Sequence record: NC_048792.1
Reading direction: 5' to 3' (one strand)
DNA length: 64,000 bases
Shown here: piece by piece, positions 17,638-45,146 of the stretch
Position numbering within the stretch: the first letter of the stretch is position 1
Layout of the letters: the number at the start of each line of letters is the position of its first letter
Notes under the pieces: generated by a model
Database searches by the model: none
Seen by the model: only the letters and a program-made list of their open reading frames with translations
What the model was told of the DNA's origin: nothing
Translations under genes and position numbers: made by a program

Positions 17638-18879
17638 ATGTTAGAGTCAATAATGACTGTGCTTGAGAAATTCAACCACATTGCAAAAGACAACATGTTA
17701 CTTAGCGTGTTGTTTGGCGGCTCTGGGGTGATGTTGATTACAGCGGTGGTGAAGGGCTTACCATCTAAGTTGTTCAACTTCTTCTTACACCACCTCACTA
17801 CGCGCATCAACATGGAGACAATCTTCAACTATACGCACTTTTCTAACTTTGAAGAGTGGTTCTCCAGTAGTAAGTGGGTTCGCTACGTCCGTTCGGTACA
17901 GCCGTCAGTAACGGGTAACGGCAAACAGTCTGCCGGGATGGGGACTCATTGGTTCTTCTATAAATGCAGGCCTGTTAAGTTCACTAAGAAGATGGTACAG
18001 AGCAATGGTCGTAATGATGGGTCAATGGATATGGAATTCCGATTCTTTACCCGTAACCATGCACTCATCGATCAGTTCTTTGCCGAGATATCTCGCTCGC
18101 CAGATCGTAACACGCACACGTTCATTTCAGAACAAGGTGCAGGTGCCTCGGTTAAGATACCTAGTCGTGATCTCGATACAGTAGTTATCGATGCTGAGAC
18201 TAAATCGAAGATCATCACTACAATTGATAACTTCAGGAAGAACCGTCAGTGGTACTACGATCGCGGTATTCCGTATAAGTTAGTTATCCTGCTCCACGGT
18301 TTGCCGGGTACGGGTAAGACGTCATTGATCCGTAGCATCGCTGGTTATCTGAAGATGGATATCATGGTATTCGACCCACGTCGCGACCCTTACAACATCG
18401 GCGCTAATCTACGCGGATTGTGGCCGGGGTACATTGGGGTTATCGAGGACATTAACGCCAAACCAATGTCTAAGGACTTAGCGATTGGACGGGAACCCGA
18501 TCCTTTCTCTCCAGTAAACTCCCCTGCATCTAATAAGCCGCCTATCAACGAAGTGGACATGAAGTCCATGTTGAACGCGTTAGACGGCCCGGTGCCATTG
18601 GACGATAAGATCATCTTCATTACGTCTAACCACGTAGAGGAGTTGGATCCTACCTTTATTCGTCCAGGTCGTATTGATCTTTCCATCGAGATCAAACCAC
18701 TGACCTACAGGGAAGTTAATGAGTTCAGTATCCTTAATTACGGCCGTGGCATTTCTGATGATGAGTCATACGGTACAATCACTGGTGCTGCACTTCAACA
18801 GATCATGTTGGATAACATCGGTGATTTCGATGGCTTCTACAAAACACTTAAAACAAAACTTTCCGAAGAGGTAGCGTAA
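17638..18879 (+). CDS. BCS1-like membrane-anchored AAA+ ATPase
   Basis: N-terminal TM; WYYDRGIPYK, GLPGTGKT, VIEDI, LNALDG, ITSNH...IRPGRID as in Bcs1. Confidence 0.85.
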   Translation: MLESIMTVLEKFNHIAKDNMLLSVLFGGSGVMLITAVVKGLPSKLFNFFLHHLTTRINMETIFNYTHFSNFEEWFSSSKWVRYVRSVQPSVTGNGKQSAGMGTHWFFYKCRPVKFTKKMVQSNGRNDGSMDMEFRFFTRNHALIDQFFAEISRSPDRNTHTFISEQGAGASVKIPSRDLDTVVIDAETKSKIITTIDNFRKNRQWYYDRGIPYKLVILLHGLPGTGKTSLIRSIAGYLKMDIMVFDPRRDPYNIGANLRGLWPGYIGVIEDINAKPMSKDLAIGREPDPFSPVNSPASNKPPINEVDMKSMLNALDGPVPLDDKIIFITSNHVEELDPTFIRPGRIDLSIEIKPLTYREVNEFSILNYGRGISDDESYGTITGAALQQIMLDNIGDFDGFYKTLKTKLSEEVA

Positions 18880-19313
18880 TGTTTTCACCCATGTTCGAGA
18901 TGATCGGTAACTTCCTCAACGGTTGTCCTCGGTCTTTCATCACTACCGATGGTTCAGTGACGCTGGAAGAGATGAAGGGGTGGTTTGGTAACGGTTACAA
19001 TATCGTTGTCTTTACTCCCCCGGAAGATACTTCCAAATCACGTTCTTACCTCGCTAAGATGTTTGAGCAGGACGCCGCTGAATTAGAAAGCGAAGAAGGT
19101 GAGAAGAAGATTTACTTCTACGAGTCAGAGGAAACCGACAGCTATCTGGATATGGCTATTCTGGTTTCCACCGACGCGTTGGTTGAGTTCTCGCGTTACA
19201 TTGATGTTGACGACAAGAACTTCAGTTACATCAACGCTACTATCAAAAAGTGCCGTGGTTACGAATCTTACGGTAAAGTCACGCTACAACTGCCAATGGG
19301 GTATCCGCTGTGA
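18879..19313 (+). CDS. hypothetical protein
   Basis: TAATG coupling to the ATPase. Confidence 0.75.
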   Translation: MFSPMFEMIGNFLNGCPRSFITTDGSVTLEEMKGWFGNGYNIVVFTPPEDTSKSRSYLAKMFEQDAAELESEEGEKKIYFYESEETDSYLDMAILVSTDALVEFSRYIDVDDKNFSYINATIKKCRGYESYGKVTLQLPMGYPL

Positions 19314-19702
19314 TCGAATACGTTATCTCAGAAACACAGATCACTGACAAGACAAAGAAACGCCTGAGTGAACAACTCGGCGAAGGTCGGGAGATTACTG
19401 CGGTTCTCTCCTTCGATCAATCTTACGTCATGGAACGTAAAGGTCCAGACTTTTCTGGTCTGTTGGTAATCACCGGGCCACTGCTGGAATACCATATCTT
19501 CCGTAAGGTCGGTATGAAGTTCGTTCATGCAGGCGCCATGAAAACTTCCATTTCAACCGTGTCACTCAGCGATGATAACTACAACGCGATGGCCGGTCTT
19601 GGAGTGGAGGATAAACTCACCGCTCTTTCCCATAAGGTCAAAGAGCTCCATCCACATATCCTCGCCTACTTTAAGACGGAGGAAATGAAAGGAGTACTCT
19701 GA
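19310..19702 (+). CDS. hypothetical protein
   Basis: GTGA coupling. Confidence 0.7.
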   Translation: MIEYVISETQITDKTKKRLSEQLGEGREITAVLSFDQSYVMERKGPDFSGLLVITGPLLEYHIFRKVGMKFVHAGAMKTSISTVSLSDDNYNAMAGLGVEDKLTALSHKVKELHPHILAYFKTEEMKGVL

Positions 19703-20091
19703 TGAAGAAGTTGATCATTGGCGTTGTTGCGTTGATGCTGGCAGTTTCGTTCAGTATCTCGTTTAGCTACGCAAAAGATCCGGTCGTGTTCCGTGAAGGT
19801 TATATCTTCGAAGCCATATTCACGGGCGACGTAGTCCACGTTAAAACTTTTGACTCCGGGGTTAATTGTACTTACGATAGTCGGGTTGATAACGTAGACG
19901 AGTTCGAAGGTAAATACTACACGATGCGGTACAGTTGCTGGATCATTCCTGCCAAGTACTTTAACAGCGTTCATCTGACTTACTACTACGACTCGGACAC
20001 CTTTAATCTGATCTATCGGAGAAATTCGAAAGGAGAGATCATTTACGAAGGGATTTGGGCCGCTAAGGATGTGCTCGATGTACGCCAGTAA
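19702..20091 (+). CDS. secreted protein, C-x22-C family member
   Basis: Signal peptide MKKLIIGVVALMLAV...SYA; CTYDSRVDNVDEFEGKYYTMRYSC. Confidence 0.8.
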   Translation: MKKLIIGVVALMLAVSFSISFSYAKDPVVFREGYIFEAIFTGDVVHVKTFDSGVNCTYDSRVDNVDEFEGKYYTMRYSCWIIPAKYFNSVHLTYYYDSDTFNLIYRRNSKGEIIYEGIWAAKDVLDVRQ

Positions 20092-20464
20092 AGCTCTCCT
20101 TGATCTGGAGGGGATACAGGTGCTACAGGTTGACAAGGAAGTCAATCTCCGTACGCTAGTGAGCTATTACCCCGTACCTGACGCTCGGGATATTCTCCGC
20201 GCAATAGGTCACCCTTGGGTGGAAATAAAGAGCGACTATCGATCTATCTTCTACTGTACGCTACGCAAAGGCACAGACCAGAAGCGGTCGTTCATGGATT
20301 CGGCTAAGGTGAATAGTTTCTTGAGCAAAGCCAAAGCCGAGGGTAAAGGCGCATTACTCATCGTACGCGGTTCACTGGTCTATTCAGAGGCCAAGGAAGG
20401 CGTTAAGCGTAAGGTGCGAGTCTACCGCAATCAACTGGGAAATATAACGGAAGTACTATTGTGA
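20078..20464 (+). CDS. hypothetical basic protein
   Basis: Overlapping start; alternative ATG at 20069. Confidence 0.65.
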   Translation: MYASKALLDLEGIQVLQVDKEVNLRTLVSYYPVPDARDILRAIGHPWVEIKSDYRSIFYCTLRKGTDQKRSFMDSAKVNSFLSKAKAEGKGALLIVRGSLVYSEAKEGVKRKVRVYRNQLGNITEVLL

Positions 20465-20733
20465 TGAAACCTTCAAGTAAGAGTATTATCATTTCGTGGG
20501 TGGTGGCGATCATGTATATCCTTTACATCGTTGCCCTGATGGTATCGCCATTGCATTGGCTGCCGTGGATCATCGCTGTTCGAGTGATTCCTTTTATTGG
20601 TATTTGGCTCTACGATCGTTACAAGGGAAATAAAGCCCACGGGTTCTTCTCGTACGTGCTTATGCCGCAAGGTATACTGTCCATAGCGATCTTAAACTTC
20701 AAACAGGATGTCAAGTACGTCTTTGGCAAATAA
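20461..20733 (+). CDS. small multi-pass membrane protein
   Basis: About three hydrophobic segments. Confidence 0.7.
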   Translation: MMKPSSKSIIISWVVAIMYILYIVALMVSPLHWLPWIIAVRVIPFIGIWLYDRYKGNKAHGFFSYVLMPQGILSIAILNFKQDVKYVFGK

Positions 20734-20744
20734 ACACAGAGAAG

Positions 20745-20772
20745 CTCTCCTAGGGATCATTCCCTAGGAGAG
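20745..20772. terminator. perfect 12-bp hairpin upstream of duplicated promoter
   Basis: CTCTCCTAGGGA-tcat-TCCCTAGGAGAG. Confidence 0.65.
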
Positions 20773-20776
20773 TCCT

Positions 20777-20815
20777 ATTATATCCATTTCCAATTTTTTT
20801 GGTGTCTATATAACC
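20777..20815 (+). repeat. 39-bp exact repeat, copy 1 (contains class II promoter)
   Basis: ATTATATCCATTTCCAATTTTTTTGGTGTCTATATAACC, identical at 40959..40997. Confidence 0.9.
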
Positions 20816-20873
20816 AGCGCGAAGGTCTATAGTAAAACCTTCTTTTCAAACGTTACAATAAAGGATTATAAAG

Positions 20874-21392
20874 ATGTTAAGTTCCCTGAAGAAGTGGGCA
20901 AAGACCGTCGTCTTTAACTACCGGGCAGATAAAGCCTGGGGTTCGGATGATGAAACTAAAATGGAGTATCTCGCTGCTATTAGAGCAATGGATTTTTGGA
21001 AGTTCAGAGAGATGCGTTTTTTCACAAAGATGGCCACCGAGGACTTTGTTAGGGTACATAATCTTACCGATCCTTTAAAGATAGCTGATGGATCAATGTT
21101 GGTCCATCGCTTACTCTCCAAGTCGACATTCAGTGCGGCGCTTAAGGTGCTCGGTATACTCTCCATATACTACACCTTCCCGGTAGAAGGGGCTGTTCTT
21201 GGTACGTGTGCATTATTAGCTCACATACGCTTCTTGTACGTAAGAGAGCTGAGATACTTAACTATCAAGATAATCCTGGAAACTGAACATAAAGAGTTGG
21301 ACGGTTGCACCCGTCCAACTCTGGCTACGTGTCTTAAATCATACGTGGTTCGGATTAAACCAATTATAAAAAGGAGGTTAGGACTTAACTAA
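20874..21392 (+). CDS. hydrophobic-hairpin protein, EHKExxGC paralogue 1
   Basis: AAGGA RBS; EHKELDGC motif shared with 41201..41815. Confidence 0.75.
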   Translation: MLSSLKKWAKTVVFNYRADKAWGSDDETKMEYLAAIRAMDFWKFREMRFFTKMATEDFVRVHNLTDPLKIADGSMLVHRLLSKSTFSAALKVLGILSIYYTFPVEGAVLGTCALLAHIRFLYVRELRYLTIKIILETEHKELDGCTRPTLATCLKSYVVRIKPIIKRRLGLN

Positions 21393-21487
21393 CTCCGCTA
21401 ACCGGGTCAGGTTATGATCCCTGGCTCGGTTACATACTAATTTAAAATACGTAAAAAATTACTTACTTACTTAAAAAGGAAACTATA

Positions 21488-21808
21488 ATGAAAACAATCA
21501 TTACCGTACTAACTACTGTTCTTATTGCAACTGTACCTTTCCTTCCTAAAGCGGAAGCAAGCAACGTCTACCATACCGACAAAGGTGTTACATTCACCAT
21601 TGATGGTAAGTTAGCAGAAATCGAACAAAACGGTAAAGTCACCAAGTGTGCTTTGGTAATCAGTAAAGATGCCACCTCTGCCTGGAAATGCAGCAACGGC
21701 AAGCAGCTCTGGATTCGTAACAAGCCGGAAAGTGAACTGATCACGTTCGCTATCTTCGATCTGAAAGATGACTACCCGGACTTCATTGATTCGGTTCTGA
21801 AGAAATAA
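21488..21808 (+). CDS. secreted protein, short variant of the Cys-pair family
   Basis: Signal peptide ending AEA; KC-x13-C with W two residues before the second Cys. Confidence 0.75.
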   Translation: MKTIITVLTTVLIATVPFLPKAEASNVYHTDKGVTFTIDGKLAEIEQNGKVTKCALVISKDATSAWKCSNGKQLWIRNKPESELITFAIFDLKDDYPDFIDSVLKK

Positions 21809-21882
21809 CCAAAATTACGGAGGGGTTATCCCCTCCTCTAATAACTAAATACAAACACTTTAAACTTAAAAAGGAAATAACA

Positions 21883-22335
21883 ATGAACCCGATCCAACAC
21901 CTCAAAAAATTCGTTAAGTCAGACGTAGAAGGTCATGCTTTCATCGCGCTATCTGATTCACCTTTCCAGACCGCAATTGTAAAATGCATTCTTGGGAACG
22001 AATTCGGTGAAGCGTTTGAATTGGCCAAGGCTAATAAAAACACGTTCAAATTCTTCGAAATAAAAGAACAGAAATATGCCGTAGTGGTGGCCAACGAATA
22101 CGACTTCGGTACCTACCTGGACTTACCTGACCAGGTGGAACAGGAAACCGAACTGGGAACTCGCGTAGTCGTCTTTGGTGAGTATGCCAAAGGCGAAATA
22201 CTTGGTAACTTGTTAATCGTCGCTGGGGCTTCCTGGTACGGTTTTACAGCGCCATGGAAGCATCACAACGATGCTCTCCATTATGTCACTTCCAGATATG
22301 CCGGTTGTGAAATGGCTCAGTGCAAAATTGCTTAA
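21883..22335 (+). CDS. hypothetical cytoplasmic protein
   Basis: AAGGA RBS; flanked by hairpins. Confidence 0.75.
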   Translation: MNPIQHLKKFVKSDVEGHAFIALSDSPFQTAIVKCILGNEFGEAFELAKANKNTFKFFEIKEQKYAVVVANEYDFGTYLDLPDQVEQETELGTRVVVFGEYAKGEILGNLLIVAGASWYGFTAPWKHHNDALHYVTSRYAGCEMAQCKIA

Positions 22336-22404
22336 CAAACTTTGCTAGGGGACATGTTCCCCTAGTTTATTTTCACTTGTCTCAAACTTAATTAGGAAAA
22401 CCAA

Positions 22405-22764
22405 ATGAAACTCATCCACGCTATCTTCGCTATCGCTCTTCTGACTTTTGCTGGTTCTGCTTACGCTAACAACTATCGTCTGTACGATGACTACAACAAT
22501 GAGATTACTCTTCGCGGTAACATGCTGAAAATTAAGAACGATGCACACGGCGGCGTTACTCGTTGTACCTTCAACGAAAACATCACGGGTAAAGAAAGTG
22601 ATGGTACAACTTACCGTGGTGCTAACTACCTTTGTGGTGGTAAGATGTGGGCTACCTTCACCACTAACCAAGAACGTCACACTGTAGAGGTTAGCGTCTT
22701 CCTGTACAAAGATACTCTCTACACCAAAGAACTGCCGCTGGCTTCTCTTGAACTCATCGACTAA
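22405..22764 (+). CDS. secreted protein, C-x22-C family member
   Basis: Signal peptide ending AYA; RCTFNENITGKESDGTTYRGANYLC. Confidence 0.85.
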   Translation: MKLIHAIFAIALLTFAGSAYANNYRLYDDYNNEITLRGNMLKIKNDAHGGVTRCTFNENITGKESDGTTYRGANYLCGGKMWATFTTNQERHTVEVSVFLYKDTLYTKELPLASLELID

Positions 22765-22782
22765 TTATTAGGGAACATTACC

Positions 22783-23139
22783 ATGAAAAAGATTTTCTTA
22801 GCTCTGCTGATCTCTCTCGTTTCTTTCTCCGCTTTCGCTGACTCCACATACGTGATCGGTCGTGAAGGTCATCGGATCGTATTTAACAAAACTGACTTTA
22901 GTTTTCAGGTAGCAGGTACTAGTACTGTCATCCGTTGTAATTTCAGCGAAACAATCGACGGGATAACTGACGGCGGTAACGTCTATACCGCTAAGACTTA
23001 CGACTGCCCTAATAATAGCTGGGCTGCGGCTAAGTACATGGTGGACTCAGGCGAGCTTTATATCACCATCTACAAACGCGGCCAGAAAGAGTCTCTCTTT
23101 AACGAGATGTTCACTAGCAAACAAATCAAACACTTTTAA
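22783..23139 (+). CDS. secreted protein, C-x22-C family member
   Basis: Signal peptide ending AFA; RCNFSETIDGITDGGNVYTAKTYDC. Confidence 0.85.
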   Translation: MKKIFLALLISLVSFSAFADSTYVIGREGHRIVFNKTDFSFQVAGTSTVIRCNFSETIDGITDGGNVYTAKTYDCPNNSWAAAKYMVDSGELYITIYKRGQKESLFNEMFTSKQIKHF

Positions 23140-23157
23140 TCAATAAGGCAATTTGAC

Positions 23158-23499
23158 ATGAACCGTTTTATCATCGTATTACTGGCTTTGATTTCTTTTA
23201 GCGCATATGCTGACACCACGACCCTTAGTGAGGGAACTGACTTTAATGCCGTGATCGGTGATAAAACCTCAGTCGTTAATTACGACGACCAGACCCTGTA
23301 TTGTGAATTAGAGAAGACCAGCCGGGAACTCGATTCAGAATACGGAAAGTATCAACTGAAACTCTATAGTTGTGGCGCCAACATCATGTTCGCCCACAAG
23401 ACTTACGACAACCAACCTTTCACGCAAGCTATCATCGGTGACAAGGCAACCAATGTAGTTTACTACAGCAACTACTTCAATAAGGAAACAACTAAATGA
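23158..23499 (+). CDS. secreted protein, C-x22-C family member
   Basis: Signal peptide ending AYA; YCELEKTSRELDSEYGKYQLKLYSC. Confidence 0.85.
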   Translation: MNRFIIVLLALISFSAYADTTTLSEGTDFNAVIGDKTSVVNYDDQTLYCELEKTSRELDSEYGKYQLKLYSCGANIMFAHKTYDNQPFTQAIIGDKATNVVYYSNYFNKETTK

Positions 23500-23861
23500 A
23501 ATTCGTTATCGCGTTATTCGTAGCCGTACTGTCCCTGGCATCTTTCTCTGCCAATGCAAGTCTGATCCACATGAGCGACGCACCTGACTACGATTTCGTA
23601 GTGGGCGACACTACTGCTCGGGTCAAAAACCTGCAAACCAATAAAACCTCTCGCTGTACGCTGATGTACAACGACAACGGTATCGATAAAGATAACCTTG
23701 TCTACGTCGTTAGCTTCTTCCAATGTGATGCAGGCTTCGAGCTGATGGCCAAGATCACAACCGAGAACGGCAACATCATCGTAGCCATGATCCGTAACGG
23801 TGCCAATAAAGAGTTCTATCGCAAGTACGCTCCTAAAGGTACTTGGGTAGTCATGAACTAA
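23496..23861 (+). CDS. secreted protein, C-x22-C family member
   Basis: Signal peptide ending ANA; RCTLMYNDNGIDKDNLVYVVSFFQC. Confidence 0.85.
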   Translation: MKFVIALFVAVLSLASFSANASLIHMSDAPDYDFVVGDTTARVKNLQTNKTSRCTLMYNDNGIDKDNLVYVVSFFQCDAGFELMAKITTENGNIIVAMIRNGANKEFYRKYAPKGTWVVMN

Positions 23862-23980
23862 ATCGATCCCTCTACCTATCCGGGTAGGGGGATTATTTTA
23901 CGCATTACTCTTTTATTTTTTATGAACGCGAAACGTTTCTGAACTCCCCCGTTTCAGAAACCTCTTAATCTCCCGCTAAG

Positions 23981-24766
23981 GTGGTACAGATGGGTCGTCA
24001 AAAAGCCGCGACAGTTAAACGTCGCGATGTTCGTAAAGCAAAAAGACAAAACAACCGTGGCATCGATAATCTGGTAGAGTTCCCAACTGCCGGTAGTCAC
24101 GACGTTATCGGCATGGCTAAAGAGAAGCGCGATACAAGCCCTCTGGAGCCACGTAACGATAACCAAGCGCAATACCTTAACGCTTTAGAACTAAGCAACA
24201 TCGTCGTGTCTACGGGCTCCGCTGGTGCAGGTAAGACCTTTATCTGCGCTGCCTGGGCAGCTGATCGTCTTCTGGCAAAAGAGACTGATCGGATTATCGT
24301 AACACGTCCGGTGTTGACTGCTGAAGAAGATCTGGGTTTCTTGCCCGGTGACATCTCCGAAAAATTCCGCCCGTTCTTCCGTCCAGTTTACGACGTGTTG
24401 CGTAAACGCCTGGGTAATAGCTTCCTCGAGTATTGCCTGAAACCGATGATCGAGAAAGTCGAGATTGCACCTTTCGCTTACATGCGTGGTCGTACGTTCG
24501 ATGATGCGGTTGTCATTCTGGACGAAGCTCAGAACGTTACTGTCAACCAGATGCGTCTCTTCATTACGCGTATCGGCATGAACTCCACTGTAATTATCAA
24601 TGGCGACATTGAGCAGTGCGATCTGCCAAACAAAAACGATTCAGGTCTGCTTGATCTGATTCGTCGTATTGAAGAACGGGATATTGACATTCCCGTAATC
24701 AAGTTCGTTAAGGATGACTGCGTGCGTTCACCGATCTGTCAGCTGGGTCTGGAGATTTATTCGTAA
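23981..24766 (+). CDS. phoH: PhoH family ATPase
   Basis: GSAGAGKT, IIVTRP, LGFLPGD, AYMRGRT, ILDEAQN; start could be ATG 23990 (MGRQKA). Confidence 0.97.
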   Translation: MVQMGRQKAATVKRRDVRKAKRQNNRGIDNLVEFPTAGSHDVIGMAKEKRDTSPLEPRNDNQAQYLNALELSNIVVSTGSAGAGKTFICAAWAADRLLAKETDRIIVTRPVLTAEEDLGFLPGDISEKFRPFFRPVYDVLRKRLGNSFLEYCLKPMIEKVEIAPFAYMRGRTFDDAVVILDEAQNVTVNQMRLFITRIGMNSTVIINGDIEQCDLPNKNDSGLLDLIRRIEERDIDIPVIKFVKDDCVRSPICQLGLEIYS

Positions 24767-24817
24767 TCATTGGGTAGAGGGCTTCGGCTCTCTACCTTAT
24801 TCGAATTCTTTTCAGAA

Positions 24818-24834
24818 CTATATCACTTATTTGA
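24818..24834 (+). promoter_or_regulatory. phiKZ-type early promoter (class I)
   Basis: CTATATCAC-ttat-TTGA. Confidence 0.7.
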
Positions 24835-24870
24835 ATGAACATTTAATAAAACATATTGGAGTTTTTAAAG

Positions 24871-24987
24871 ATGGGTGATTTCTTGGACTTTATCATGGGT
24901 GCTATTCTTTGTTCTGCTGCTGCGGGGGAATTGGACGAAGAAGAGGAAGAGCTGGAAGTTGGAGAAGTAGAGGATGAAGACGATTAA
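24871..24987 (+). CDS. 38-aa acidic peptide (not in ORF track)
   Basis: MGDFLDFIMGAILCSAAAGELDEEEEELEVGEVEDEDD; GGAG upstream, promoter before, hairpin after. Confidence 0.7.
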   Translation: MGDFLDFIMGAILCSAAAGELDEEEEELEVGEVEDEDD

Positions 24988-25027
24988 GTTCGTTCTTCGG
25001 CAGGGGTAGTTCCCTGCCCTCTATTTT

Positions 25028-25339
25028 TTGTTTTGTCTAATAAGGAGATTCGTTGTGCCCCGTTTACTTACGTTGATTGTTCCGATTTATGCTGCTGCAC
25101 TTACTTATATTTTCTCAGTGATCTACAAAGACCTCAGTGAAGATACACTCATGGTTATTACTACGCTGGGTTTCTCCGGAGTAGTCGTTTGCATTATGCT
25201 TTATAGCTACGGTATCTTCCGTAGTACGAATCGCCTCAAGGCGTGGCTGGAGAAAGGGTACTTGGATTACCTGTCGATGATCCCAAGTATTTCATTCGCC
25301 GTTTCATTAACGATCCTTTTCTACATCATGGACATTTAA
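25028..25339 (+). CDS. multi-pass membrane protein (start uncertain)
   Basis: Three hydrophobic segments; true start probably slightly downstream. Confidence 0.6.
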   Translation: MFCLIRRFVVPRLLTLIVPIYAAALTYIFSVIYKDLSEDTLMVITTLGFSGVVVCIMLYSYGIFRSTNRLKAWLEKGYLDYLSMIPSISFAVSLTILFYIMDI

Positions 25340-25340
25340 A

Positions 25341-25670
25341 ATGATAGAGTATATTCGTTCTGAGAATTTCCTGTCTGGCTTTTACTTCGTTCTCTTCGTG
25401 GTGTCAACCTTCACGTTCATCGGGATTCGTCACTCTGAAGTCATTGGTCAGTTGACTAGAGCGACGACTTGGGTGTTGGTCGCAGCTGGTCTTATGACTA
25501 TCTTTGGTTTTGTGGTTATCGCACCTATTACTAAAGACTGGAGTCATCTCGGCTTCCTGCCCTTCACTTCGTTCCTCGGTTACGTTGTAGCCAGGATCAC
25601 TACGTCGATGGAGAACGAGAGAGTCGATAACAAGTCTAAACGACGGAGCATTCACCATGCTAAAGACTGA
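25341..25670 (+). CDS. multi-pass membrane protein
   Basis: Three hydrophobic segments. Confidence 0.7.
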   Translation: MIEYIRSENFLSGFYFVLFVVSTFTFIGIRHSEVIGQLTRATTWVLVAAGLMTIFGFVVIAPITKDWSHLGFLPFTSFLGYVVARITTSMENERVDNKSKRRSIHHAKD

Positions 25671-25956
25671 CCAAAAATACCCGCGTCGTGGCGGGGCGGT
25701 AGAGAACTTAATCTACCTCGTGCAATTCGTGGTGGTTGTCTTTGGGTACTTCCAGTTCTTGGTTGAGCCTGAAGACATTTACAACCAACTGGTCTTTATT
25801 TTCATTTCGTCGATTATCATTGAGAATCTGGCAGTACTGTGGATTCTCCGTGCTAAGATCGTTACCTCGGTCACTAATGCAGTTATCTGGTGTGCATTGG
25901 GATCGGTACTGGGTTGCGTTATTACAGCCTGGTACTTTGAGGTATTCACGCTTTAA
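25657..25956 (+). CDS. multi-pass membrane protein
   Basis: Three hydrophobic segments. Confidence 0.7.
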   Translation: MLKTDQKYPRRGGAVENLIYLVQFVVVVFGYFQFLVEPEDIYNQLVFIFISSIIIENLAVLWILRAKIVTSVTNAVIWCALGSVLGCVITAWYFEVFTL

Positions 25957-44702: not shown

Positions 44703-45146
44703 ATGAAGAAACTCACCGCTGTTATCGCACTGACCGCTGCTCTGTTCTCCGCCAATACCCTGGCCGGGACATGGGGCTCTTCCTGGGCACAAGGAACCAC
44801 TGAGGTTATTAACAATAACGCAAACGGCTCCTCTGTAAACTTCTCCTGTTCGGACGATGGTGATAAGCGCATTCTGTTCGTAGATACTGCAGATGGCCGT
44901 CGCTACGACAGCGAAACTGACGGTTACGCTATCGTTGCTAAAATCGATGGTAACGAAGTTCGGTTTGTTTCTACCCTTAGCCGCGCTGGTGAGGCGAACT
45001 GGGCGTACTTCTGGAAGAAGGCGGAAACTGTGAAATCCAAAACCATCACAGTGATCGTCCCTAACCACAAACCGTTCACTGTATCCACCGCAGGTCTGAA
45101 AGCTGTCGCAAAAGACAAATCGCTGAAAGACTGCTTCTTTAAATAA
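44703..45146 (+). CDS. secreted protein with Cys pair (distinct family)
   Basis: Signal peptide MKKLTAVIALTAALFSANTLA; WAQGTTE...FSC...DCFFK. Confidence 0.8.
   Translation: MKKLTAVIALTAALFSANTLAGTWGSSWAQGTTEVINNNANGSSVNFSCSDDGDKRILFVDTADGRRYDSETDGYAIVAKIDGNEVRFVSTLSRAGEANWAYFWKKAETVKSKTITVIVPNHKPFTVSTAGLKAVAKDKSLKDCFFK

Follow-up and report, generated by a model that had tools for sequence, protein, structure and literature searches.

The DNA analysed here is a window of 64,000 nucleotides (nt) from sequence record NC_048792.1, which corresponds to the terminal 64 kb of the jumbo Serratia phage Moabite record MK994515 (273,933 bp, genus Moabitevirus). Within it lie six small genes, g264, g268, g270, g271, g272 and g273 (Table 1), each encoding a protein with signal-peptide features and a single pair of cysteines. 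These genes are members of one family, which is restricted to a few related jumbo phages and has expanded in the Moabite-like phages. The region that holds them (positions 19000-25000) is 100% identical to Moabite and to phage Haymo, a near-identical phage of the same species, and 97-98% identical to 2050HW, BUCT660, Yaphecito, Kodama and Pectobacterium phage vB_ParM-25 (megablast).

Table 1. Positions in the 64-kb window of the family genes, of their flanking stem-loops and of other features discussed in the text (aa, amino acids; ORF, open reading frame).
Feature	Positions	Strand	Product (aa)	Cysteine motif encoded at	Remarks
g264 (CPT_Moabite_264)	19702-20091	+	129	19867-19938	apart from tandem block; signal peptide ~residues 1-24, mature domain ~105 aa
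g268 (CPT_Moabite_268)	21488-21808	+	106	21647-21691	C-x13-C
g270 (CPT_Moabite_270)	22405-22764	+	119	22564-22635	first gene of four-gene tandem cassette
g271 (CPT_Moabite_271)	22783-23139	+	118	22936-23007	second tandem gene
g272 (CPT_Moabite_272)	23158-23499	+	113	23302-23373	third tandem gene
g273 (CPT_Moabite_273)	23496-23861	+	121	23655-23726	fourth tandem gene
Terminator-like stem-loop and T run	22344-22373	+			between g269 and g270; upstream edge of g270-g273 cassette
Terminator-like stem-loop and T run	23867-23899	+			between g273 and phoH; downstream edge of cassette
AAA ATPase gene	17638-18879	+			opens the conserved block
g266	20464-20733	+			one predicted membrane span
g267	20874-21392	+			interspersed gene
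15-nt motif, copy 1	21468-21482	+			directly upstream of g268 start codon
15-nt motif, copy 2	21863-21877	+			directly upstream of g269 start codon
15-nt motif, copy 3	22385-22399	+			directly upstream of g270 start codon
g276, g277, g278	25055-25956	+			small membrane proteins, two or three spans each; downstream of phoH
ORF	44703-45143	+	147		Sec signal peptide

The initial annotation, made from the sequence without database searches, had described an array of six diverged secreted paralogues, five with an exact disulfide motif and one with a shortened form of it, and the window translation places all six ORFs at the proposed starts. Scanning the 64 kb in six frames recovers the motif C-x15-Y-x4-[YF]-x-C five times, each time within these ORFs, which makes them its sole carriers in the window; in 200 residue shuffles the mean was 0.04 occurrences and the maximum 1. 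The ORF of g268 does encode the shortened C-x13-C variant. Every one of the six proteins has exactly two cysteines, both in the mature part, and none of the mature domains has a cysteine outside the hairpin described below. The cleavable-looking signal peptides were likewise recovered by a hand-made rule (N-terminal charge, hydrophobic core, small-x-small site, no lipobox): all six proteins have one or two K/R near the N-terminus, a hydrophobic core of 10-13 residues (Kyte-Doolittle 12-mer mean 2.4-3.2) and a small-x-small site, with predicted cleavage after SYA, AEA, AYA, AFA, AYA and ANA, sites of the signal peptidase I type. A lipobox is present in none of them. In a crude scan of the window for signal-peptide-like ORFs on the + strand, family genes made up six of the nine found, and the same N-terminal layout is kept in about 25 relatives that otherwise share little sequence.

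Judging from these sequence features, export by the Sec pathway, cleavage and disulfide formation are strongly suggested. A different view would be that the N-terminal segments stay uncleaved, so that the products are inner-membrane signal-anchor proteins, or that they are not exported and act in the cytoplasm or the virion. Export and cleavage were called by a heuristic, and the g264-type copy of one metagenomic relative lacks the signal-peptide part, both of which speak for this view. However, the full n-h-c layout is present in all six proteins and conserved across relatives, a core of 10-13 residues is short for a membrane anchor, and an invariant cysteine pair would best suit an oxidising compartment. 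We consider non-cleavage or lack of export very improbable, and treat the six products below as predicted exported proteins.

Outside the motif there is little to hold the sequences together, as had been noted: the mature domains (82-105 aa) are 10-26% identical in pairwise comparison. A chain of phmmer matches between mature domains nevertheless links the five proteins with the exact motif (g270-g271, 9e-5; g272-g273, 1e-4; g271-g273, 3e-3; g264-g272, 9e-3). The same five match phrog_5474, a PHROG to which no function is assigned, over most of the profile length (g264, 9e-5; g270, 4e-3; g271, 2e-9; g272, 1.3e-7; g273, 1.1e-4). On this sequence evidence the five form one family. The sixth protein, g268, matches neither phrog_5474 nor any of the other five directly, and joins the family through a chain of positional orthologues: it matches its counterpart in phage Totoro (4e-11), which in turn matches the orthologue of a metagenomic relative (2e-5); this last protein carries a long C-x22-C hairpin and matches the family hidden Markov model (HMM) at 5e-7. 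The HMM used for this comparison was built with signal peptides removed and every g268-type sequence left out. Since a long-hairpin orthologue provides the link, the short hairpin of g268 can be read as a nine-residue loss in one branch of the family. The same HMM approach, applied to the window and to the remaining sequence of near-identical Haymo, finds no further copies; the best match outside the six has E about 1. The phmmer chain, the phrog_5474 matches, the orthologue chain and the structure models described next all support the proposal that these small, exported-looking beta proteins with their fixed cysteine pair are a single paralogous family.

Two members, g271 and g268, were modelled as mature domains with AlphaFold2, with the window paralogues as the only input alignment. 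Both models are confident (g271, pLDDT 91.7 and pTM 0.80; g268, pLDDT 92.6 and pTM 0.80) and contain eight beta-strands in the same order, which confirms for these two members that the domains are beta-rich. Both models are all-beta, the sole exception being a helical turn of three residues close to the g271 C-terminus. In the g271 model, Cys33 opens the long beta4 strand and Cys56 closes beta5, and since the cysteines sit at the start of one strand and the end of the other, the predicted disulfide would staple the beta4-beta5 hairpin at its base. When 21 mature domains drawn from seven genomes are aligned, these two cysteines are the sole invariant residues. The next most conserved positions are G41-I42-D43 at the hairpin tip, aromatics at 49, 54 and 87, and three core hydrophobic positions, and all remaining columns have high entropy. 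The idea of a fixed disulfide scaffold with variable surfaces is thus borne out, with conservation limited to the hairpin and a few core positions. The tip of the hairpin (g271 mature residues 40-47) is Asp/Gly-rich and reads G-[IV]-D-[DNK]-x-G in most members; the g268-type, short-hairpin branch lacks this Asp/Gly tip.

The arrangement of the genes is compact. Genes g270-g273 are tightly packed, with two 18-nt gaps and one ATGA overlap at the g272 stop and g273 start, and because they are packed between two terminator-like stem-loops they look like one transcription unit. Both stem-loops are annotated as terminators in MK994515; an independent scan finds the upstream one at 22344-22366, and the downstream one has a GC stem followed by a T-rich tail in the sequence. 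Gene g268 stands alone between stem-loops as a monocistronic-looking cassette, and g264 is embedded among overlapping genes downstream of an AAA ATPase gene. The interspersed genes g265, g267 and g269 show neither a family match nor an export signal. A sigma-70 promoter scan gave fewer matches than shuffled sequence and is uninformative on timing.

The family is narrowly distributed. An exhaustive HMM search of 1.84 billion representative proteins returned 19 matches at E <= 1e-3, about 17 of them real; these are Moabitevirus proteins and a few proteins from assembled sequencing runs. The two spurious matches were a mosquito protein, which is an ankyrin/NACHT protein, and a 229-aa repetitive sequence that matches nothing in Pfam and shows none of the family features. 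Every contig retrieved has the same layout, with a BCS1-like AAA ATPase gene, several small genes, the secreted paralogues, phoH and the thymidine kinase gene, and in Klebsiella jumbo phages of two other genera the family likewise lies directly upstream of phoH. A locus search with g273 alone returned only 2050HW, and more distant jumbo phage contigs, with PhoH proteins 55-66% identical, contain no family member or comparable secreted array within 7 kb. The phage of record ON375847, isolated on Pectobacterium aroidearum, is 97% identical over the region, with the same coverage pattern as 2050HW; phages from different reported host genera thus carry near-identical arrays.

Copy number ranges from one to six, and the variation among related jumbo phages that the initial annotation had proposed to look for is therefore real. 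The Klebsiella phages FBKp24 and KpLz-2_45 have one copy and one clear copy plus one weak, short-hairpin copy, respectively. Among the other relatives, L008 and L009 have two copies in the tandem block and L010 has three; L006 has two tandem and two separate copies, the g264-type copy without its signal-peptide part; and L005 has three tandem copies (one of them a weak HMM match) and two separate ones. Three tandem and two separate copies are found in 2050HW and BUCT660, and four tandem and two separate copies in Moabite, Haymo and Totoro. The gene that separates Moabite and Haymo from 2050HW and BUCT660 is g271, whose whole cassette is absent from the latter two. Between Moabite and 2050HW (region 22765-23157 in the window; L003 4262-4279) this difference is an exact 375-nt unit that begins behind one stop codon and ends behind the next. 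Because the junctions have TAAT in common and similar 18-nt spacers, gain or loss of the unit by recombination between spacers is suggested.

Divergence depends on the range considered. Copies that Moabite shares with 2050HW or BUCT660 are 97.5-100% identical, in line with the neighbouring genes. Between Moabite and Totoro, the AAA ATPase, PhoH and thymidine kinase are 69-74% identical, while g270, g271, g272 and g268 are 26-37% identical (30% for the best Totoro match of g270), g264 is 52% identical and g273, the best-conserved member, 68%. The g264 orthologues of Totoro and L005 together span 52-57%. Other small unannotated neighbours are nearly as diverged as the family at the Moabite-Totoro range.

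Do these proteins have a characterised relative? The initial annotation had pointed to host lysozyme inhibitors (MliC, PliC, Ivy) and to T4 Spackle, and GenBank lists g268 and g271 as 'putative lysozyme inhibitor' from an HHpred match to the Neisseria ACP structure (5MY7_A). Under this explanation, the family would be lysozyme inhibitors of the MliC/PliC/ACP type that act by pushing loop 4 into a lysozyme's active site; the candidates are the tail enzyme of a rival phage, a virion or lysis enzyme encoded by the phage itself, and a lysozyme of animal origin. There is a resemblance in general build. Like MliC and PliC (PF09864; E. coli MliC, Salmonella PliC), the phage proteins belong to a Gram-negative envelope setting, have about 90-110 residues (90-100 is typical of the shared build), and combine a predicted signal peptide for export with eight predicted antiparallel strands and one putative disulfide. 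ACP, MliC and PliC are eight-stranded barrels in which loop 4, between beta4 and beta5, is inhibitory (PMC5507604); the working element there is thus in the same place as the hairpin conserved here. Neisseria ACP shares the eight-stranded barrel and the signal peptide and, like the phage family, lacks the MliC motifs. A Haymo gene of about 6.6 kb, annotated 'putative glycoside hydrolase family protein', also speaks for this explanation.

The comparison breaks down in the details. In ACP, MliC and PliC the disulfide joins the first and last strands (beta1-beta8; PMC5507604), whereas in the phage family it would join beta4 and beta5, and the phage proteins are phage-encoded and occur in up to six diverged copies. 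The MliC/PliC motifs SxSGAxY (loop 4) and YxxxTKG (beta6; PMC5507604) are in none of the 21 mature domains. Neither the six proteins nor the 21 family members match anything in Pfam, its MliC model included, at E <= 1; other Pfam matches were to signal peptides or noise, and NCBIfam gives noise matches only. A PDB sequence search with two family profiles found antibody-chain noise and one fimbrial noise match. MliC, PliC and ACP are absent from the best 50 Foldseek-PDB matches of either model, and Ivy, PliI and PliG are absent from the best 50 Foldseek matches as well as from the Pfam, NCBIfam and PDB-sequence results. Comparing the family profile with an E. coli-type MliC profile in hhalign gave a probability of 0.4%, a weak negative because the MliC alignment is shallow (74-88% identity). 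The annotators' HHpred match to ACP stands in the record note with its probability truncated. Kinship with MliC, PliC, ACP or Ivy is therefore not supported, and we regard lysozyme inhibition of this particular type as unlikely. The label 'putative lysozyme inhibitor' on two members is unsupported by the tests run here and should not be propagated. One further NCBIfam match, of g271 to the Shiga-toxin B-subunit, scored 13 bits against cut-offs of 165-204, with no single aligned stretch passing, and was dismissed as noise.

Kinship with Spackle fares no better. T4 Spackle is a periplasmic, 75-residue alpha-helical bundle with one disulfide that inhibits the tail lysozyme of a superinfecting phage (PMC7677548). 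Spackle (gp61.3) is, like the family, a small phage-encoded exported protein with one disulfide, and it is the closest functional precedent for the role proposed below, but an alpha-helical bundle is a different structure from the all-beta models. Because there is no sequence or structure match, any likeness to Spackle would concern the proposed role only.

Structural searches place the fold without naming a function. Against the PDB, Foldseek found nothing at E <= 1e-3 for the g271 or g268 model. The best matches were weak (TM, the template-modelling score, 0.3-0.6; E 0.03-0.7) and comprised the uncharacterised BVU_3222, ZinT/YodA, fatty-acid-binding proteins, beta-lactoglobulin, lipocalins and two type VI immunity proteins. 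The calycin-type barrels among these (ZinT/YodA, lipocalins) and the type VI immunity proteins (BtaiB, 9jdd_B; Tsi1, 4fgi_H) resemble the family as small antiparallel barrels, several of them periplasmic binders, but they are larger, the structural matches are insignificant, and there is no sequence signal. Could the family then be small-ligand or metal-binding calycin-like barrels of the periplasm, sequestering or carrying a lipid, a cofactor or a metal ion? The identity of these neighbours points that way, and the Asp/Gly-rich hairpin tip recalls many metal-binding loops. Yet the matches to these barrels all have E > 0.03 and TM near 0.5 or lower, domains of 82-105 residues would be small for a lipocalin-type cavity, six diverged copies that vary in number are unexpected for a single ligand, and the g268-type members lack the acidic tip. 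We find ligand binding a distinctly unlikely main function.

Closer structural neighbours are found among predicted viral structures. Besides the query itself, the confident matches are uncharacterised proteins encoded by E. coli phages Mt1B1_P17 and nieznany and by Klebsiella phage Menlow (TM 0.72-0.77) and two further entries (TM 0.82-0.85); a protein of Erwinia phage Frozen scores TM 0.66. With neighbours at TM up to 0.85, the fold recurs in enterobacterial phages, each time without a known function. Word-indexed homologue searches begun from g271 and g268 recovered no cluster other than those of the queries, and PADLOC-DB, with its models of anti-phage defence and exclusion, gave only one 12-bit noise match. 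In the searchable literature, we found no paper combining 'lysozyme inhibitor' with 'jumbo phage' and nothing on the family under Moabite or Moabitevirus, and the Moabite genome announcement leaves the six genes unmentioned (PMC6639629). The initial annotation had called the array its best candidate for an undescribed system, which stands only in part. Two members already carry a label, and the family is already catalogued, since five of the six proteins match phrog_5474; its function is unassigned in PHROG, and the paralogue expansion, the cysteine staple and the position next to phoH are not in the phrog_5474 record.

Taking the evidence together, we tentatively favour the following explanation as the most likely one: the proteins act in the periplasm as stoichiometric binders or inhibitors and together make up a variable set by which the envelope of the infected cell is protected or remodelled. 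Each product would be made in the infected cell and exported via the host Sec pathway, and signal peptidase I would cleave it at the A-x-A site. In the oxidising periplasm it would fold into a soluble eight-stranded antiparallel beta-barrel of 82-105 residues, with its long beta4-beta5 hairpin stapled at the base by the disulfide between the two cysteines. Binding would occur via the hairpin, with its Asp/Gly tip and two aromatics, and the adjacent sheet, while the remaining surface differs from paralogue to paralogue. A small soluble barrel, a stapled hairpin and a variable number of diverged copies are consistent with envelope binders or inhibitors, although the binding function and the target class are what we infer from this combination. 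The array may be read, as a reasonable inference that the initial annotation had also drawn, as a putative repertoire of binders with one target per paralogue. The leading target class would be peptidoglycan hydrolases arriving from outside, as in superinfection exclusion. Bacterial beta-sheet lysozyme inhibitors push a loop between antiparallel strands into the enzyme (PMC7677548, PMC5507604), so a hairpin-based inhibitor would have a known mode of action. Hydrolases are our first guess because beta-sheet inhibitors insert loops into enzymes in this way and because Spackle illustrates the benefit to a phage of a hydrolase inhibitor placed in the periplasm.

Several points weigh against this explanation. 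No search (Pfam, PDB sequence, Foldseek, PADLOC, hhalign) found significant similarity to a characterised inhibitor or immunity protein. The chief difficulty within the explanation itself is that g268 and its orthologues are shortened by nine residues in the very hairpin that is proposed as the working part, so that either the hairpin tip is dispensable or the g268 branch does something else. The calycin-like fold class suits small-ligand binding as well, and export is predicted from sequence by a heuristic only. In addition, because close copies change no faster than their neighbours and other small genes diverge similarly at longer range, rapid diversification is not specific to the family.

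A related explanation keeps the periplasmic destination and changes the target. Here the proteins would serve in superinfection exclusion or envelope masking by binding non-enzyme host components (receptors, porins or transport systems), in the manner of T5 Llp or phi80 Cor but as soluble proteins. T5 Llp is a lipoprotein, unlike the six proteins, none of which has a lipobox, and no similarity to known exclusion proteins was found in PHROGs, PADLOC, Pfam or the PDB. The variation from one to six copies, the difference of a whole g271 cassette between near-identical phages, the predicted periplasmic destination and the variable surfaces upon a fixed scaffold would all be at home in such a system, as would the small membrane proteins encoded nearby, and known phage exclusion proteins do act in the envelope (PMC9586334, PMC7677548). 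We hold masking of non-enzyme components to be rather unlikely, and retain periplasmic binding or inhibition, with peptidoglycan hydrolases from outside as the leading target class, as the preferred account.

Other features of the locus deserve mention in their own right. The phoH neighbourhood is rich in envelope-directed small proteins: g266 has one predicted membrane span, and g276, g277 and g278 are small multispanning membrane proteins. The AAA ATPase shows a weak match to the BCS1 N-terminal domain (23 bits, below the cut-off). BCS1-type ATPases transport folded proteins across membranes, and the placement of a BCS1-like ATPase beside a set of predicted exported proteins is curious. A 15-nt motif, AACTTAAWWAGGAAA, occurs three times in the array region (Table 1), and the rest of the 64 kb holds a single further match, which differs at two positions (chance expectation 0.8). 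The motif may represent a leader or ribosome-binding context common to these genes, or a regulatory site of local reach. Far from the array, a 147-aa ORF encodes a textbook Sec signal peptide and has no Pfam match. It was rejected as a family member (family HMM E about 0.4-0.7) and, from its sequence, looks like another exported phage protein.

There are also signs of gene exchange around the family. Gene g267 is 100% identical in BUCT660 and 38% identical in 2050HW, where the flanking genes are 96-99% identical, and it has no counterpart in Totoro or L005; g267 looks like a spot of local mosaic replacement inside the array region. In Totoro, an annotated HNH endonuclease gene lies directly downstream of phoH (L004 7048-8103), and L006 has an unannotated 329-aa gene with no Pfam match on record in the same spot (L006 4117-5106). 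Moabite has neither gene there, and mobile endonuclease genes may use this slot after phoH for insertion.

In jumbo phages, genes without a known role number in the hundreds, and to our knowledge the workings of few periplasm-acting phage proteins are understood, among them Spackle, Imm, Llp, Cor and the lysis regulators. The family described here makes a compact case, with a confidently modelled fold, a fixed staple, free surfaces and a constant slot next to phoH. The relatives provide a natural copy-number series from one to six, in which some near-identical phages are set apart by exactly one cassette. A bolder extension of our preferred account, and a doubtful one, is that the proteins represent a new class of phage-encoded periplasmic shields: modular, fast-turnover, disulfide-stapled mini-barrels, each of which would neutralise a different envelope-attacking enzyme or entry route, the putative targets being rival phage tail hydrolases, type VI effectors or bacteriocins. 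If this is true, the family would be an independently evolved beta-barrel counterpart of T4 Spackle that has expanded into an array in jumbo phages. More generally, should a role as envelope-protecting binders be borne out, the proteins would offer a second, structurally unrelated solution to the problem that Spackle solves, and a small scaffold for the evolution of binders.

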